Of a DNA stretch of 64,000 bases, positions 9,755 to 41,722 are shown piece by piece. Each line of letters begins with the position of its first letter. Positions within the stretch are counted from its first letter, which is position 1. A program made the translations under genes and the position numbers. The DNA is taken from sequence record MW749006.1. One strand, 5' to 3'. The notes beneath the pieces were generated by a model, which saw nothing but the letters and a program-made list of their open reading frames with translations, had not been told where the DNA came from and did no database searches.

Positions 9755-9770
9755 ACATATATAGTAAGTA
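9755..9770 (+). promoter_or_regulatory. Putative phage early promoter motif (ACATATATAGTAAGTA)
   Basis: Same motif recurs at 11787, 29959, 30577, 31721, 34741 (degenerate), 37446 and 41647, always intergenic and upstream of non-structural genes. Confidence 0.6.
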
Positions 9771-9781
9771 GAATAGCTAAT

Positions 9782-10000
9782 GTCAACTACCCCTACCTTA
9801 AGGTAAGGGCTTGTGAAGAGTAGCCAACTACTCCAACAACTAAGCTGTTGTACTAGCCGGATTGTAACTTAGCTACAGCGACGTGGTAGTCGCAAGAATA
9901 CGTCTCGAATGCTTCTCTAGTTCGGACCTCTATGGTAGAAAGTGGCGAAGAGACCTTGACTTGTCAACAAGATCCCGTAAGGGAATAACTTAAGGAGGTG
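9782..10000 (+). ncRNA. omega-RNA scaffold (HEARO/OMEGA-like) of IsrB
   Basis: About 220-nt structured non-coding region directly 5' of isrB: GTCAACTACCCC...GGGCTTG start, internal hairpins, GAATGCTTCTCTAGTTCGGACCTCT...GGCGAAGAGA segment resembling omega-RNA core motifs, ending in an AAGGAGG RBS. Confidence 0.8.
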
Positions 10001-10005
10001 TTCAC

Positions 10006-11133
10006 ATGCTGAACTCCCAAGAACCAGCAAAACAAAGATGGGTTCCTGTGGTGTCTTCCACAGGTAAACCCTTGATGCCTTGCTCTCCCAAGAGAGCTAG
10101 GAAACTAATGTCCAAAGGTAAAGCTATACCTAGACACCTTAAAGGACTTTTCTACATTAAGTTAACGGATAGAAGTGATGGTGAGGTTCAATCCGTTGTT
10201 GTGGGTATAGACCCGGGAAGTAGATACGAGGGATACACGGTTAAGTCAGCTACTCGCACTTTCTTAAACGTCAACTCACTAGCTGCTGATGGTAAACGTG
10301 TAAAGAGGATTATGGAAGCTAGAAGTAACTCTAGGAGAGCTAGACGACAGCGTAAGAATCCGTACCGAGCTAATCGAATGAATCGCTCCAGAAGTAAAGG
10401 GTGGGTTCCACCCTCTACTAAAGCTAGGTGGCAACTTAAACTTAACATTCTGAAGTGGTTTGCTAGATTATATCCAGTTACCAATGTGGTTGTGGAGGAT
10501 GTTATCTTCGCTACCGAGAAAGGTGGTAGTGTACGTAACTTAGGATTCTCAGCTATCCAATCTGGTAAGAATTGGTTATATTCTCACATAGTAGCTCTTG
10601 GTTACAACCTAACCACTTTCAAAGGAAGTCAAACAGCAGCTTTCAGAAGACGATTGGGATTGTTCAAGACCACGAACAAAGCTTCTAAGTTGTTTGATTC
10701 GCACTGCGTAGATTCATGGGTACTCGCTAACGAGGTTTTAGGTAACCAACTAAAACCTGACCTAACGCACGTACTAGAACTCAAACCGCTTACTTACATT
10801 AGGAGGCAACTACACCGTACTTGCTTCAAGAAAGGAGGTATTAGAAGTAGGCGTGGTGGTACTATGTCTCTAGGTATTCAGAGAGGTACTCTGGTAAAAC
10901 ACGTTAAACATGGTAAATGTATAGTAGGGGGTAACAATGGCGTAGACAGAGTTAGTTTACATTGCAACATCTCTGTTAGAAATTTAACTCGGAATACTAA
11001 ACTAGTAGACTTGCAACTCATAGCTCACTCACCTTGGTTACTGGTAGATAGACTACGTACTTGTAAGAAAGAGAAGAACGCTAGACGTTACAACAGATAT
11101 TTACTTAGGAACTCGTTACTAGGTAATATGTAA
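10006..11133 (+). CDS. isrB: IsrB RNA-guided nickase (IscB family lacking HNH; RRXRR/PLMP-RuvC)
   Basis: N-terminal PLMP (GKPLMPC), RuvC-I GIDPG, Arg-rich bridge helix RRARRQRK, RuvC-II VVVEDV, RuvC-III SHCVDS; no HNH insertion; 375 aa. Confidence 0.85.
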   Translation: MLNSQEPAKQRWVPVVSSTGKPLMPCSPKRARKLMSKGKAIPRHLKGLFYIKLTDRSDGEVQSVVVGIDPGSRYEGYTVKSATRTFLNVNSLAADGKRVKRIMEARSNSRRARRQRKNPYRANRMNRSRSKGWVPPSTKARWQLKLNILKWFARLYPVTNVVVEDVIFATEKGGSVRNLGFSAIQSGKNWLYSHIVALGYNLTTFKGSQTAAFRRRLGLFKTTNKASKLFDSHCVDSWVLANEVLGNQLKPDLTHVLELKPLTYIRRQLHRTCFKKGGIRSRRGGTMSLGIQRGTLVKHVKHGKCIVGGNNGVDRVSLHCNISVRNLTRNTKLVDLQLIAHSPWLLVDRLRTCKKEKNARRYNRYLLRNSLLGNM

Positions 11134-11140
11134 GTTAACC

Positions 11141-11170
11141 GAGTAGATAGAGTATTATCTATCTACTCCC
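11141..11170 (+). terminator. Hairpin after isrB
   Basis: Perfect 10-bp stem GAGTAGATAG/CTATCTACTC. Confidence 0.5.
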
Positions 11171-11217
11171 TTTCCTCCCCTCCCTAAAGGAAGGGGTCAC
11201 CATGGAGTAAACCATAT

Positions 11218-11766
11218 ATGTTTAACCAGATTCTAGAAAAAGCATTACCAGAAATCAATTCACATTTACCTTTAGATAGTTTTACAGAGATAACATCAGT
11301 GCGACCTGGGAAGAACAACGACACTCATTCTATAGTTTTAGAGGGAGTGGATGTGGATGGTTGTCGAGTGATTGAATCTTACTGGATTGGTTGTCGTGAT
11401 TCAGATTGTGGTTTAGAGAATGTCCATGAACTAAAAGAATTACCAGACGGTTTGTTGGAGGTAATGAACAAGTGTGGTAATGAACTTACGTTACTACAAA
11501 CAGAAGCTATTGTTTACCATCTGAATAAACTACAAGGTTTAACTGAAAAAATCAGTAACGACTATGTAGGTGGTATCTACTCTTATAACGACGAAAACGT
11601 TGGAGATAGAACTTGGCGTAAGTTCTTAGTAACAGAAGTCACTAATCCGGTATTTCCGATGAGACTACGTGGGGTCTCTATGGACGACGACGGTGAGTGT
11701 CGTGAATTAGAAATCTCCCAACTGAACTTGTTAGAGCGTGTTGGTGATTATCCTCCACTACTCTAA
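11218..11766 (+). CDS. Hypothetical protein
   Basis: 182 aa; its GGAG RBS lies within the element right end. Confidence 0.7.
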   Translation: MFNQILEKALPEINSHLPLDSFTEITSVRPGKNNDTHSIVLEGVDVDGCRVIESYWIGCRDSDCGLENVHELKELPDGLLEVMNKCGNELTLLQTEAIVYHLNKLQGLTEKISNDYVGGIYSYNDENVGDRTWRKFLVTEVTNPVFPMRLRGVSMDDDGECRELEISQLNLLERVGDYPPLL

Positions 11767-11907
11767 CATCGGAGTGAAATAAAACTCCATATATAGTACG
11801 TAGACTGCAATCGGTCTAACCTTCAAACCAAAGCAACACTAGTAATAAAAAACTAACCGACAATATAGTCTGGTTAGTAAACCTATCTTAAACCAGGAGT
11901 AACACAA

Positions 11908-29945: not shown

Positions 29946-30024
29946 ATGGTATAAGGTTACATATATAATACTTAGTGAACTGTGTAGAATATATCTACCA
30001 GGTTTAAAGTGTAGAGGATAACGA

Positions 30025-30535: not shown

Positions 30536-30642
30536 CCACGTATATGTCTTAGTTAGTACCTGAAATTCTTACAGTTACATATATAGTTATTAGAAGCTAT
30601 ACTGAATATATCAGTTAGCGAACTTTTGACCCGGAGGTCATC

Positions 30643-31707: not shown

Positions 31708-31779
31708 ACCCAGTATAAACACATATATAGTAAGTATAAGCTATACTGAATATATCAGTTAGCAAACAGGAGTAACATT

Positions 31780-34730: not shown

Positions 34731-34834
34731 CATATAACCCCAAATATAGTAGGTAGATTAGAACACATAGTCTACATAGTCTACCTGCTATCTACTGAGC
34801 TGCAGCTCAAACTTTCCCTAGGAGAAACAAAAAC

Positions 34835-37320: not shown

Positions 37321-37669
37321 AATGGTAAGTCCCTACATAGCTACCTGACTGTTCACAAAATACAACAAGTACTAATAATAAATTACTATATGAATACATA
37401 CATATGGAGGATTAACTAAGTACATGCATCGGGAACCTTTATAAACCTATATATAGTACTTAGATAAGCATACAGTATTAACTGTGTTAGCTATATCTAC
37501 CCTCACTCTAACCGGTTATAGTGAGTAGTGTTATGTTGAGTAAAAAATAACTCACACATACATACAGTGGAAAGATATCATCGACGTAAAGTCGGTGTGT
37601 TGGACCAAGGAAGAATTAATCTTAAAAACTAACGTTAGTAGTAAACTATATAAACCAGGAGTTACAAAA

Positions 37670-39493
37670 ATGGCCGTTAATGTAAAGAACAACCAAAACC
37701 AAAACAACCCTAACCAGGGTCAAGCTCAACAACAGTACCAACAGCGTAACGCTGGCTTCACTCCTAACTTTGGTATCAACTCTCGTTTGAGTGTATTCGG
37801 TAATGGTGGTGAAGTATTTGAAGCTCTCTATGAGAAGCTAAACGCACAAGTTAAGTACTTTAATGAAGAAGCAAAAACTGCTGAAAAGTATGCGGTTATC
37901 AAACTCTTGAAGCAGAATGCTGGTTTGAACTACAGCGGTATCGTTCTTTGTGAGACTCTGAATGATACTACTTCAGCTCACATCTTGATGGTAGAGCGCA
38001 CTGGTGACTATCCAGAGAAAGTGATTGAGAACATCAACGGTACACGTTACGAGATCCTTCGTACACCTGCTGATGCTTTAGATCATAAATACGCAGCACA
38101 AGCTCAGTTAGCTGTAGCTGCTGCACTGAAGATTCCTGCTGACTCAGTAGTAGTTACTGACGGTGTTCTAGTTCCTAACGAGTTTGATGTTAGTAACGAA
38201 GTAGCAACTATGGATCTACTGAACAACGCATTCAAGGCCATCCACTCAGAAAACCAGATCCGAGTGAATGACTATAAAGGTATCTCTATTCCTGAGATGA
38301 TGCGTGATAACCCGAACGGTAAGTTCTTAGTTAACATGTACTTTAACTCTGAAGAAGTTGATGTACTTGATCAGATCGGTTTACCAATCCGTCAAGACGT
38401 TTGTATCTCACTGAAGTACAAAGCTAACACTGGTAACGACAATCGTTCAGTTAACCAATCTAACGACATGTTTGATGTTGTTAAGACTTACGGTTATGTA
38501 GACTTTGAATACCAAGGTAACCAACAACAACAAGGTGGATACCCTTCAACTCAGAAGTTCGTACCAAACTTTGTAATCACTCACATCGAGTCTGAAGTTG
38601 CAGCTACTGCTGACATCTTGATGTTAGGTGTTGCGTCTGTCATGGCGTTGAACGAAGACTTACAGTGGATGCAAGCGTTCCGTAGCACAGCTCCACGTAA
38701 AGGTGAGAGTGACTACAACGACATCGGTGGTCTTAACGTTGAAGGTAACTTAGAGAATACTCCTACTGGTTACGGTAAGAAGTATGACACTAAGAGCAAG
38801 ACTTTCTCAATGATCGAAATGAACAAGTTCATGCAGACATTGGTTCGTCCTAACCTAGTTGTGTCTATCGACGTACCTAAAGCTGGTGGTGAAACTTGGT
38901 ACACTAGTATCTTCAACTACGTTAAGAACGGTGACGTTGGTGCATTTGAGCGTCTGCTCTTAGGTATTAACACACTGACTAACGGTGGTATGACTAACTA
39001 CGCAGCTCAACCTTTCATGGGTATTAGTAACCGCATTCATGGTGGTTTCTATAAGACCAAAGACGGTATGAAAGATCTGCGTCACTTAGGTAGCTACTTG
39101 AGCGTAAGTAACTATATCGCTGATACTGCACAAGACCCAGCACTCATCAGTCAGTACACTAACACTCTGTACAACAGCTCACTTCCAACTGAGTTACGTG
39201 CAGCAGAACGTAAGAAGTACATCGACGAAATGAGTAACAACACCGCAGTGTACAAACAGTACTACGACCGTTTGACCTTCACTGGTCACTTCTTGTCAGC
39301 ACTGTCTACTGCACTTGGTAATGCTGGCTTCTCACCAGTGTTCAGTAACATGGGTATTGCTAACGATATGTTCGCACGTCGTAGCACTGTTGACTTCAGT
39401 TCAGCTATGCTTGATCCGAACGCTCGTTTCATGGGTCAGAACACCACTTACGGTGGTTTCTACTCACCACGTAACTACACCCGTGGTTACTAA
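37670..39493 (+). CDS. chmA: Chimallin, major phage-nucleus shell protein (phiKZ gp54-like)
   Basis: ATG 37670 after AGGAG; about 607 aa, Q/N-rich N-terminus, TQKFVPNFVITHIE and NDIGGLNVEGN motifs, highly expressed codon usage; lies between phuZ and gp55-like nvRNAP as in Chimalliviridae. Confidence 0.82.
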   Translation: MAVNVKNNQNQNNPNQGQAQQQYQQRNAGFTPNFGINSRLSVFGNGGEVFEALYEKLNAQVKYFNEEAKTAEKYAVIKLLKQNAGLNYSGIVLCETLNDTTSAHILMVERTGDYPEKVIENINGTRYEILRTPADALDHKYAAQAQLAVAAALKIPADSVVVTDGVLVPNEFDVSNEVATMDLLNNAFKAIHSENQIRVNDYKGISIPEMMRDNPNGKFLVNMYFNSEEVDVLDQIGLPIRQDVCISLKYKANTGNDNRSVNQSNDMFDVVKTYGYVDFEYQGNQQQQGGYPSTQKFVPNFVITHIESEVAATADILMLGVASVMALNEDLQWMQAFRSTAPRKGESDYNDIGGLNVEGNLENTPTGYGKKYDTKSKTFSMIEMNKFMQTLVRPNLVVSIDVPKAGGETWYTSIFNYVKNGDVGAFERLLLGINTLTNGGMTNYAAQPFMGISNRIHGGFYKTKDGMKDLRHLGSYLSVSNYIADTAQDPALISQYTNTLYNSSLPTELRAAERKKYIDEMSNNTAVYKQYYDRLTFTGHFLSALSTALGNAGFSPVFSNMGIANDMFARRSTVDFSSAMLDPNARFMGQNTTYGGFYSPRNYTRGY

Positions 39494-39885: not shown

Positions 39886-39943
39886 ATGTCAACTACCCCT
39901 CCCCCCCCCCGGGGAAGGAAGGGTCTCCATGGAGTACAGTTTT
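39886..39943 (+). mobile_element. 58-bp internally deleted (ends-only) derivative of the IsrB element
   Basis: ATGTCAACTACCCCT matches 9779-9793 exactly; GGAAGGGTCTCCATGGAGTA closely matches the right end GGAAGGGGTCACCATGGAGTA at 11189-11209; the two are joined by a C10 run. Confidence 0.75.
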
Positions 39944-41107
39944 ATGAAACCAACACAACTAGATCTAATAGAACCAAACCCTTTTGAGGGTATGGACGAT
40001 AAACAAATTATCGAACACATGTTAAAAGAAGACTATTTACCGTTACTAAGATACGTAGTTAATCCCACTGAACGAGTTATTGTTGAAGCTTTAACTATTA
40101 ATGGAATGAACTTACGTTGGGTAAAGGAACAAACTCCTTACCTATGTAGTCTAGCTGTTAAACAGAACGGATACTCTATTCAATGGGTTAAAGATCAAAC
40201 AGAAGAACTCAAGTGGTTAGCTTTAAGGGAGAACGCTGAGTGCTATCGTTTCATTAAAGAACCCACCGAAGAAATGAGTATCTTTATGGTTTCTGACTCC
40301 GACATTAAACCTTCTTTAGATATGGTTAAGAATCAAACTAAAGAGATCTGTTTAGCTGCCGTTGAAACTTTTGGATACAATCTACGTTATGTTGAAGAAC
40401 AAACTGAAGAGATGTGTTTGTTAGCAGTTAAACAAGACGGATTTAACATACGGTATGTGAGAGATCAAACAGAAGAAATCTGTATGGAAGCTATCGCTAA
40501 TGAACCAGACTCACTAATGTACGTTAAAGAACAAACCGAAAAGATGTGTTATTTAGCAGTGTCTAAAGCACCAAATCTAGTTAAGTATGTTAAGAAACAA
40601 ACATTACCTATCTGTATGGTTGCTGTAACTAAAAGTCACTTTACATTGAAGTACATTAGAAACCAAAATGTAGCTATCTGTATGACTGCTGTTATTCAAG
40701 ACGGGAGAGCCTTACAGTACGTAAGAGAGCAAACTGAGGAGATCTGTATAGAAGCTATTACTAATCACCCAGACTCCTTTAAACACGTTCACAGACAGAC
40801 TCCTAAGGTATGTTTGCTAGCTGTTAAACTAAACCCTTATCTGTTATGTGAAGTACAAGACCAAACAGAAGAAATCTGTATGGAAGCTATCCAGAATAAC
40901 CCTTTAGTTATCTCACACATGTGGTTTCAAACTGAGAAGTTATGTATGGACGCTGTAAGGTTAGACTCTAGTGCAATTGAACGTGTAAGAAACCAAACAG
41001 AAGAAATGTGTCGGTTAGCATATGAGAATAACCCAAAGACTATTATTTGGATCCGAGACTCAAATGTAGTCTCTAAACTTATTAACGAAACATCCCAGTC
41101 TAATTAG
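39944..41107 (+). CDS. DUF4116-like protein with more than 12 tandem 24-aa repeats
   Basis: QTEEICMEAI..N...L.YV repeats; start at ATG 39944 spaced correctly from GGAG (track start 39929 overlaps the RBS). Confidence 0.75.
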   Translation: MKPTQLDLIEPNPFEGMDDKQIIEHMLKEDYLPLLRYVVNPTERVIVEALTINGMNLRWVKEQTPYLCSLAVKQNGYSIQWVKDQTEELKWLALRENAECYRFIKEPTEEMSIFMVSDSDIKPSLDMVKNQTKEICLAAVETFGYNLRYVEEQTEEMCLLAVKQDGFNIRYVRDQTEEICMEAIANEPDSLMYVKEQTEKMCYLAVSKAPNLVKYVKKQTLPICMVAVTKSHFTLKYIRNQNVAICMTAVIQDGRALQYVREQTEEICIEAITNHPDSFKHVHRQTPKVCLLAVKLNPYLLCEVQDQTEEICMEAIQNNPLVISHMWFQTEKLCMDAVRLDSSAIERVRNQTEEMCRLAYENNPKTIIWIRDSNVVSKLINETSQSN

Positions 41108-41623: not shown

Positions 41624-41722
41624 ACGTAGTGGGATGTAATACAAACACATATATAGTAAGTAGTGTGGGTAATGTTTATTTTACTTACATGTTAATAGCT
41701 TGACTAACTGGAGTGAAAGATA

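Follow-up and report, generated by a model that had tools for sequence, protein, structure and literature searches.

The closest solved relative of the system studied here is the DtIsrB-omegaRNA complex of Desulfovirgula thermocuniculi (structure 8dmb; Hirano et al. 2022, PMC9581776). The target-adjacent motif (TAM) that IsrB orthologues recognise on the 3' side of the target is NTG, NTGA or NTGG, and in DtIsrB residues R323 and Q326 read TAM bases 3 and 4 (PMC9581776). In IscB and IsrB elements the omega-RNA is bounded by a transposon end, and the Geobacillus IscB element has the TAM TTCAT, the reverse complement of ATGAA, at its left end (PMC10055086). IsrB, its RNA, its transposon context and also IsrB genes in other phages are already known. 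The homing of OMEGA nucleases into co-infecting phages was still theoretical in a 2026 review (PMC13565253). Here we describe an IsrB element in a stretch of 64,000 nucleotides (the window) that matches the genome of Bacillus phage vB_BspM_AgentSmith at 100% identity (MW749006.1; 200,233 bp; window position = record position - 62,000). The element lies on the + strand from position 9782 onward and is made up of an omega-RNA scaffold, an IsrB gene and flanking hairpins. Our preferred reading, which we hold with moderate confidence, is that it is a non-autonomous IS200/IS605-type element that homes between co-infecting phages by means of an RNA-guided nick.

Anatomy of the IsrB element

The IsrB gene (AGENTSMITH_73; 10006-11133, + strand), defined by its open reading frame (ORF), Pfam match and structure match, encodes 375 aa and is listed in the record merely as a 'putative RRXRR domain-containing protein'. 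Pfam RRXRR (PF14239) matched residues 13-172 at 3.8e-40, and the NCBIfam IscB model was matched in its first (N-terminal) half alone, below the cut-off. DtIsrB was the best sequence match in the Protein Data Bank (PDB; 1.7e-41 over residues 13-309; profile 1.3e-64). An AlphaFold (AF2) model with a predicted local distance difference test (pLDDT) score of 80.6 had 8dmb_P as its best PDB fold match (E 3.5e-24; template-modelling (TM) scores 0.69/0.78; 353 columns), and all IscB structures matched worse. The protein comprises a PLMP domain, a split RuvC domain, an Arg-rich bridge helix and a C-terminal TAM-interacting domain. The PLMP motif at residues 22-25 aligns to the PLMP domain of DtIsrB, with M24 and P25 invariant in the alignments of 25 and of 31 homologues. 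The RuvC motifs are GIDPG (67-71), VVEDV (E164) and HCVD (233-236), and the catalytic residues D69/E164/H233/D236, which align with DtIsrB D65/E159/H226/D229, stand in columns that are invariant across the alignments of 25 and 31 homologues. In the model the bridge helix spans residues 96-114 (R106, R110 and R114 invariant in the 25 homologues), the fold of the TAM-interacting domain is present, with six strands at 296-348 and a full-length fold match, and an extra C-terminal helix is seen at 354-371. The HMMER alignment of the TAM-interacting domain to 8dmb failed past DtIsrB residue 301, and residues of this domain were mapped from a joint alignment of families that included DtIsrB. No HNH family was found in the IsrB ORF by Pfam even at E<=1; the RuvC-II and RuvC-III motifs are 68 aa apart, and the alignment with DtIsrB needs no insertion. 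The initial annotation, made from the sequence alone, had described a 375-aa PLMP/RuvC/bridge-helix protein with the motifs GIDPG, VEDV and HCVD and without HNH, and all of these features were recovered here; sequence, fold, RNA covariance and element anatomy agree on its identity as IsrB.

The omega-RNA scaffold comprises 224 nt (9782-10005, + strand), and its 5' edge is the right-end (RE) boundary of the transposon, as is canonical for IS200/IS605. The Rfam family HEARO (RF02033) matched 9782-9960 over the full model (1-211, with internal deletions) at E 1.7e-6, so that the expected HEARO match was found along the whole model, but with a score of 41.6 bits it remained under the Rfam gathering score of 83. 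A covariance model of our own (R1), built from ten copies of the phage family, gave full-length matches directly upstream of the IsrB ORF, ending at its start codon, at ~65 distant bacterial or viral loci. In the alignment of these ~65 loci 91% of cells were paired, compared to 30-50% in slid controls; compensatory changes occurred in 51 of the 54 pairs, and the covariation score was 0.378 compared to <=0.06 in slid controls, with the caveat that the alignment had been fitted to the model. The single-sequence fold of the 224-nt RNA was indistinguishable from shuffles (z -1.33), and support for the RNA structure therefore comes from comparison alone. On this basis the ~220-nt structured RNA with an IscB-type 5' end that had been proposed initially is a 224-nt RNA with strong covariation and a HEARO match from model position 1. 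Just 3' of its tandem 3' hairpins lies AAGGAGG (9992-9998, + strand), read from the sequence as the Shine-Dalgarno of IsrB; the same arrangement after tandem 3' hairpins is found in DtIsrB (PMC9581776). A long-range pairing of 9902-9910 with this Shine-Dalgarno region, predicted by RNAalifold, was dropped as it breaks in one copy (L014). Between a 19-nt stretch of the scaffold (9900-9918) and the 3'-terminal part of the IsrB coding sequence (11070-11088) there is 79% complementarity, probably by chance.

Homology between all copies of the element starts exactly at GTCAAC (9782), which corresponds to HEARO model position 1, and the left flanks are unrelated; the guide would therefore be flanking phage DNA. 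The putative guide segment TAGTAAGTAGAATAGCTAAT (9762-9781, + strand), delimited by this homology start, lies directly 5' of the scaffold; its length of 20 nt was borrowed from DtIsrB (PMC9581776), and the true 5' end may differ. A search of JGI metagenomes and IMG/VR with a 19-mer of the window guide returned seven chance matches, none of them in a related context.

Both ends of the element carry a subterminal hairpin. The palindrome CCCCTACCTTAAGGTAAGGG (9790-9809, + strand) pairs in the consensus fold and is at the same time the first stem-loop inside the P1 stem of the omega-RNA, and the second hairpin, CCCCTCCCTAAAGGAAGGGG (11177-11196, + strand), identified by comparison of copies, lies on the canonical left-end (LE) side. 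The two are near-identical direct copies of one palindrome, in accordance with the matching terminal hairpins reported in the initial annotation, and lie 8 nt from the element end on one side and ~21 nt on the other. The IsrB stop codon is followed by a perfect 11-bp stem-loop formed by the inverted repeat GAGTAGATAGA / TCTATCTACTC (11141-11168, + strand), which is identical in both AgentSmith copies of the element despite a synonymous divergence (dS) of 0.38, and whose variants in relatives keep pairing as G.U on the + strand only. Further downstream is the element-borne segment CCATGGAGTAA (11200-11210, + strand), conserved in all copies and scars, which provides a ribosome-binding site (RBS; GGAG) for the downstream gene; clean pairs of filled and empty alleles show that this segment plus 5-7 nt belong to the insert. 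With subterminal hairpins at both ends, and without terminal inverted repeats or target-site duplication, the element is of the IS200/IS605 type (ISC1).

No transposase was found in the element or on the related contigs that carry it, and among 79 ATG-initiated ORFs of 105-200 aa in the fetched AgentSmith genome none matched the Y1 transposase family PF01797 in Pfam; within this scope the transposase is absent, as initially stated. Motif search and ORF clustering likewise found no TnpA next to IsrB in 172 loci. Such a lack is usual, tnpA accompanying ~1.5% of IscB/IsrB (PMC10055086).

Copies, insertion sites and selection

Full copies of the element are not confined to the window. AgentSmith gene 1 encodes a second 375-aa IsrB; its element shares 87% identity with that of the window over 1.43 kb but lies within different flanks. 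Metagenome assemblies contained ~30 protein clusters at 81-88% identity. Twelve related contigs were fetched, in which the element occupies eight or more different places; these contigs resemble relatives of AgentSmith (phiKZ internal proteins, split RNA polymerase (RNAP), RuvC, SbcC), and one of the related contigs (L173) carries chimallin and the element together. Related phage contigs contained nine full copies and three scars at different sites, and the element was always co-oriented with the neighbouring genes. Close relatives were absent from 185,579 species-representative genomes (GTDB), and no bacterial donor or cognate TnpA can be named; DNA searches of phage databases returned AgentSmith alone. 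Distant relatives (40-57% identity) occur in Chloroflexota, in cyanobacteria and on ~80 IMG/VR contigs, the latter with an omega-RNA match upstream of the IsrB gene.

Two clean filled/empty pairs define the mode of insertion: one between the RuvC gene and gene 68 (L012 versus AgentSmith), the other between two internal-protein genes (L008 versus AgentSmith). The inserted DNA of each pair fits precisely between the final base of the 5' untranslated region (UTR) and the ATG of the next gene, without duplication, and it ends in CCATGGAGTA plus 5-7 nt, which amounts to a Shine-Dalgarno at the right distance, whereas the displaced gene's native Shine-Dalgarno ends up inside the guide. The shared end sequence followed by ATG was also found at the other canonical full-length sites and at three scars, with GTG instead in L185; the exceptions to an ATG/GTG flank are the window copy and the copy in L009. 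As far as sequence can tell, the ATG flank fits the known IsrB TAM NTG.

The residues that read the TAM vary together with the flank. DtIsrB R323 and Q326 align on a conserved R-x-x-Q of the phage IsrB family. Copies with Gln at the Q326 position are all followed by ATGA (five sites), and those with Lys or His at this position by ATGT, ATGT, ATGG and GTGA; the sample is small and the association borderline (Fisher ~0.05). A protein that reads the empty site of its own element would be expected to show such co-variation at TAM base 4. Relatives do carry empty alleles of three sites, in some cases in contigs of the same metagenome samples. In both clean pairs (L012 3081-3100 versus L003 18953-18975; L008 6804-6823 versus L002 35268-35289) the empty allele mismatches the guide at position -2, beside the ATG; with n = 2 this may reflect escape from targeting or chance.

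All ORFs of the nine copies examined were intact (374-375 aa). The median pairwise ratio of nonsynonymous to synonymous divergence (dN/dS) was 0.21 at a dS of ~0.4, and 0.23 between the two AgentSmith copies. Among the copies the scaffold had a Jukes-Cantor (JC) distance of 0.097 compared to a dS of ~0.42, and thus changed about four-fold more slowly than synonymous sites. By these comparisons both the protein and the RNA are under purifying selection, and the possibility that the whole family is a decaying pseudogene was rejected on account of the intact ORFs and the dN/dS. Furthermore, the copies in L010 and L013 differ by a dS of 0.04 yet occupy different loci; movement has therefore been recent.

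In the GenBank record the second AgentSmith element is split across the two ends (L002 3-1432, minus strand, continuing into the end of L004 at record position 200233) and has a C12 run beside it; the record therefore probably begins at a break in the assembly and not at a physical end of the genome. AgentSmith also contains three solo-hairpin scars of ~50 nt, each made up of GTCAACTA, one hairpin and the terminal CCATGGAGTA. One of them lies in the window (39888-39944, + strand), where GTCAACTA, a degenerate hairpin, TCTCCATGGAGTAC and AGTTTT directly precede the ATG of gene 100 (39945); the other two lie outside it, at record positions 148750-148797 (L005 48750-48797) and 151093-151140 (L004 860-907). 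Each scar abuts the ATG of a gene and still provides its RBS. The annotated start of gene 100 (record 101929) falls in the CCATGG of the scar, and the real start is probably window position 39945. The structure of the scars fits a deletion between the two hairpin repeats, as read from their sequence. Excision of IS200/IS605 elements leaves no scar, and an origin of these remnants as TnpA excision products was rejected because such excision is seamless.

Two further observations concern IsrB loci beyond the canonical copies. In L010, and likewise in L007, the full element is followed by a 589-aa gene, downstream of which there is the C-terminal half (229 aa; L010 5738-6427) of a second, divergent IsrB; this half falls in a clade at ~55% identity, like P0037, and represents another IsrB lineage of this phage group in degraded form. 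At distant loci (L015-L172) a co-oriented ATG-initiated ORF begins <=60 nt from the IsrB stop in 63-78% of cases, compared to 14-24% for random positions; this was discounted as evidence, since ordinary operon genes would score alike. The LE-side non-coding segment at distant loci is often 5-45 nt long with no obvious hairpin (few loci, inspected by eye), and the setting of many IsrB genes may resemble that of free-standing homing genes more than that of elements with complete IS ends.

Homing, the window copy and competing readings

We envisage homing as follows. The element, being co-oriented with phage genes, would be transcribed by a phage RNA polymerase, in the window copy from the native promoter of gene 74. 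The transcript would give rise to an omega-RNA whose 5' guide is the phage DNA just upstream and whose 224-nt scaffold binds IsrB, itself translated from the same RNA. The resulting ribonucleoprotein (RNP) would recognise an uninterrupted allele, in which the guide match is followed by NTG, mostly the ATG start codon of the next gene, and would spare the element-bearing genome, where the guide match is followed by GTCAAC. IsrB would nick the non-target strand, replication would turn the nick into a break in a co-infecting relative without the insertion, and phage recombination would repair this break from the element-bearing genome, whereby the element is copied in. Rare moves to new sites would involve a Y1 transposase acting in trans or another route. 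A dense genome could tolerate the element as it lands between a Shine-Dalgarno and the ATG and brings a replacement Shine-Dalgarno at its end, and loss would occur by deletion between the end hairpins, giving the 50-nt scars. The initial annotation had suggested activity against related phages that lack the insertion, whether as homing or as interference, and a comparison of the locus across such phages, with its filled and empty alleles, fits this suggestion: homing agrees with the data because of these alleles together with flank-derived guides, the NTG, purifying selection and the co-variation at TAM base 4.

Empty alleles of its own site shed light on both borders of the window copy. Upstream lies a phage promoter-like motif, CATATATAGTAAGTAG (9756-9771, + strand), outside the element and native to gene 74, since it is kept in the empty alleles of this site in L012, L182 and L183; L184 is a further empty allele. 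The element starts 10 nt after the motif, and the promoter therefore overlaps the presumed guide. At the far end, ACCATAT (11211-11217, + strand) is native 5'UTR of gene 74 by comparison with the empty alleles: GTAAACCATATATG matches the native UTR of L183 and L182 at 13 of 14 positions, and the junction with native DNA falls in GTAA (11207-11210). This copy is without the terminal TATTG that is present in four other copies, and without ~35-40 nt of UTR. The simplest history suggested by these junctions is that the element first inserted canonically at a point further upstream and that a deletion then ran through the shared GTAA; element DNA would therefore end at ~11206-11210, with one cleavage site lost. 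Of the span 9782-11217 initially assigned to the element, the left end stands, and the last seven positions (11211-11217) are native 5'UTR. Gene 74 (11218-11766, + strand; 182 aa, function unassigned), recognised from its homologues at empty sites, appears now to be translated from an element-borne or hybrid RBS.

A guide that covers a conserved phage promoter, a far terminus fixed to native DNA, the lack of a transposase and the keeping of two divergent copies in one genome would all suit an element domesticated by the phage as a weapon or regulator, which benefits the phage rather than itself, for example by excluding related phages or by tuning the gene 74 promoter. We consider this improbable: the family is mobile, with many sites, scars and recent movement; its nuclease residues are kept, unlike those of the domesticated TldR-type factors of the literature; and it targets the empty sites of the element itself, as selfish homing would have it.

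The window protein is unusual at the position of DtIsrB R323. This column holds Arg in 30 of 31 sequences, including the second AgentSmith copy, and Asn326 in the window copy only; R326N is the window protein's sole private change at otherwise invariant columns among the 31 close homologues. At the position of DtIsrB Q326 the window copy has R329. The substitution R323A abolishes cleavage in DtIsrB (PMC9581776), and by this analogy the window copy may be inactive; it would seem that it either cannot read the TAM or reads something else. Asn326 bears on the activity of the window copy and not on the descent of the family. The initial description of the system as apparently intact is right as regards the catalytic residues; the TAM-reading Arg, however, is replaced in this copy alone.

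These features raise the possibility that the window copy is a disabled or immobilised relic of an active family, persisting because its removal would disturb the expression of gene 74. Besides Asn326 at a position where Ala is not tolerated by DtIsrB, the replacement of the terminal TATTG, a cleavage site, by native UTR and the reduction of three other AgentSmith copies to scars speak for such a fate. The ORF, however, is full length with all catalytic residues kept, the scaffold is conserved as in the other copies, and one private substitution compares with 0-5 in the others; the pairwise dN/dS is ~0.2 against every other copy, a measure that does not isolate the terminal branch. We regard a relic as possible, though clearly less probable than a copy of an element that homes.

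Alternatively, the window copy may have switched its TAM, Asn326 reading A at position 3 (NTA rather than NTG) and so directing attack on relatives with ATA. R326N lies exactly at the position that reads G3, R329 occupies the position at which Q326R relaxes base 4 in DtIsrB (PMC9581776), and Arg-to-Gln/Asn changes turn G-reading into A-reading in Cas9 protospacer-adjacent motif (PAM) engineering (cited in PMC9581776). Furthermore, the sole perfect protospacers found, those of L183 and L184, match the guide flank over 27 of 27 nt and are followed by ATA. Yet this concerns a single substitution and a single type of allele, the other own-site empties being followed by ACA (L182) or ACG (L012) and none by NTG, and Asn, being shorter than Arg, may not reach the base. 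A switch of this kind therefore seems unlikely to us.

Several observations weigh against homing by an RNA-guided nick. A nick is a weaker trigger of recombination than a double-strand break, and homing cannot explain new sites, for which no transposase was found. No susceptible target was among the empty alleles found, each of which either mismatches the guide beside the TAM or is without NTG and would be a poor target; this is expected if susceptible alleles get converted, with chance also possible. As for the window copy, its guide may be short, given the overlap of the guide region with the promoter-like motif, its far terminus is replaced by native DNA, and Asn stands at the DtIsrB R323 position. 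The scaffold's HEARO score is below the gathering score. Finally, the copy in L009 (1217-2581) sits inside a coding region, a homologue of gene 77, and has a truncated end: the far-end hairpins are missing, ~28 nt of coding sequence are replaced and the junction shows GTAGA microhomology. The L009 copy is a product of illegitimate recombination, not a canonical insertion.

A bolder version of homing can be drawn from the same data, namely a lineage of IsrB elements specialised for nucleus-forming jumbo phages, and we put little weight on it. In such a lineage start codons would serve as TAM and integration motif, the element would replace the displaced RBS with its own and homing would take place inside the phage nucleus. 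An arms race with the target sites would complete the picture, the surviving empty alleles being changed in seed or TAM and the window copy answering with an Arg-to-Asn change that retargets NTG to NTA.

Phage context and comparison with known systems

The window encodes a homologue of chimallin, the phage nuclear shell protein (37595-39493, + strand; Pfam PF25677 at 82 bits versus a cut-off of 27; PHROG nuclear shell protein, 3.3e-66), and a PhuZ-type phage tubulin (34835-35752, + strand; PHROG tubulin PhuZ, 1.7e-61). The AgentSmith record has many annotated split RNAP beta subunits, and its annotation includes UvsX-, RuvC- and SbcCD-like recombination proteins. On gene content, with chimallin and PhuZ genes in one window, a split RNAP and a genome of 200,233 bp, AgentSmith can be taken as a nucleus-forming (chimallin) jumbo phage, and the initial annotation had placed the element in the same context.

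The motif CATATATAGTAAGTAG recurs 58-147 nt upstream of genes 75, 86, 87 and 90 and of the genes for PhuZ, chimallin and an RNAP beta subunit. In its general form, (T)A(T/C)A(A)nnnCATATATAGTAAGTAG, it is confined to the + strand (9 matches versus 2.2 expected); copies in the window lie, besides 9756-9771, at 11788-11803, 29960-29975, 30578-30593, 31722-31737, 34741-34756, 37448-37463 and 41648-41663, all on the + strand. It probably represents a class of phage promoters, and possibly an early class, as suggested by its position ahead of chimallin and PhuZ.

The phage nucleus is known to exclude bacterial RNA-guided DNA nucleases. AgentSmith, a chimallin phage, itself encodes a Cas9 ancestor that is apparently maintained by selection; if IsrB acts on phage DNA it must enter the nucleus, which would imply an import route and offer a tool for jumbo-phage editing. 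Were the scenario of a specialised lineage true, IsrB would be the first RNA-guided nuclease known to work inside the chimallin shell. The family provides a natural test of the homing of OMEGA nucleases into co-infecting phages without a transposase, for which the material is at hand: sites in both the filled and the empty state, scars, a natural variant of the TAM-reading residue and a culturable phage with two divergent copies. Insertion at start codons together with a donated RBS also illustrates how a transposon lives in a genome with almost no non-coding DNA. Our literature search found no paper on AgentSmith or on IsrB in chimallin phages, on a multi-copy, site-polymorphic phage IsrB family, or on start-codon-adjacent insertion with a donated RBS, and the link of IsrB to chimallin phages is new here.

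Other phage-borne IsrB/RRXRR proteins, at 32-43% identity, include those of the Microcystis phages Ma-LMM01 and MaMV-DC, that of a huge phage (LR745208) and K2IsrB, which came from a viral metagenome (PMC9581776); none of these genes has been described as a multi-copy, site-polymorphic family. The closest match remains DtIsrB (PMC9581776), which has the same domain order (PLMP-RuvC I-bridge helix-RuvC II-RuvC III-TAM-interacting domain), is likewise without HNH, aligns in the catalytic D/E/H/D and gives the best fold match. Its omega-RNA, too, is encoded ahead of the protein gene in the same orientation and has its guide at the 5' side, tandem 3' hairpins and a Shine-Dalgarno at its end, and the motif adjacent to the phage element agrees with NTG(A). 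In contrast to DtIsrB, the phage protein is only ~30% identical, has the additional C-terminal helix (354-371), works with a scaffold of 224 rather than ~264 nt, if at all, and in the window copy has Asn for R323 and Arg for Q326; moreover, the host is a lytic-type jumbo phage, whereas DtIsrB resides on a bacterial chromosome.

The IscB element ISGst5 of Geobacillus stearothermophilus (Meers et al. 2023, PMC10055086) resembles the phage element in several respects. In both, a transposon end delimits the omega-RNA, neighbouring DNA provides the guide, the TAM lies at the opposite end (most phage sites have ATGAA, which is TTCAT in reverse complement), the element is non-autonomous and the donor joint is the natural target. 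However, ISGst5 encodes an IscB with HNH that makes double-strand cuts, whereas the phage enzyme is a predicted nickase; and ISGst5 is chromosomal, has TnpA in the same genome and undergoes restorative homing on the sister chromosome, while the phage element is without TnpA and has co-infecting phage genomes as its plausible targets. The phage element also comes close to the free-standing homing genes of T-even phages (SegF, SegB, Mob; PMC13565253), which are likewise compact nuclease genes between conserved phage genes, patchily distributed in relatives and expected to spread by break-induced recombination in co-infection with co-conversion of the flanks. The IsrB element differs from them in its transposon ends, in a predicted nick rather than a cut, and in a predicted recognition that is RNA-guided and set by the flank rather than encoded in the protein.

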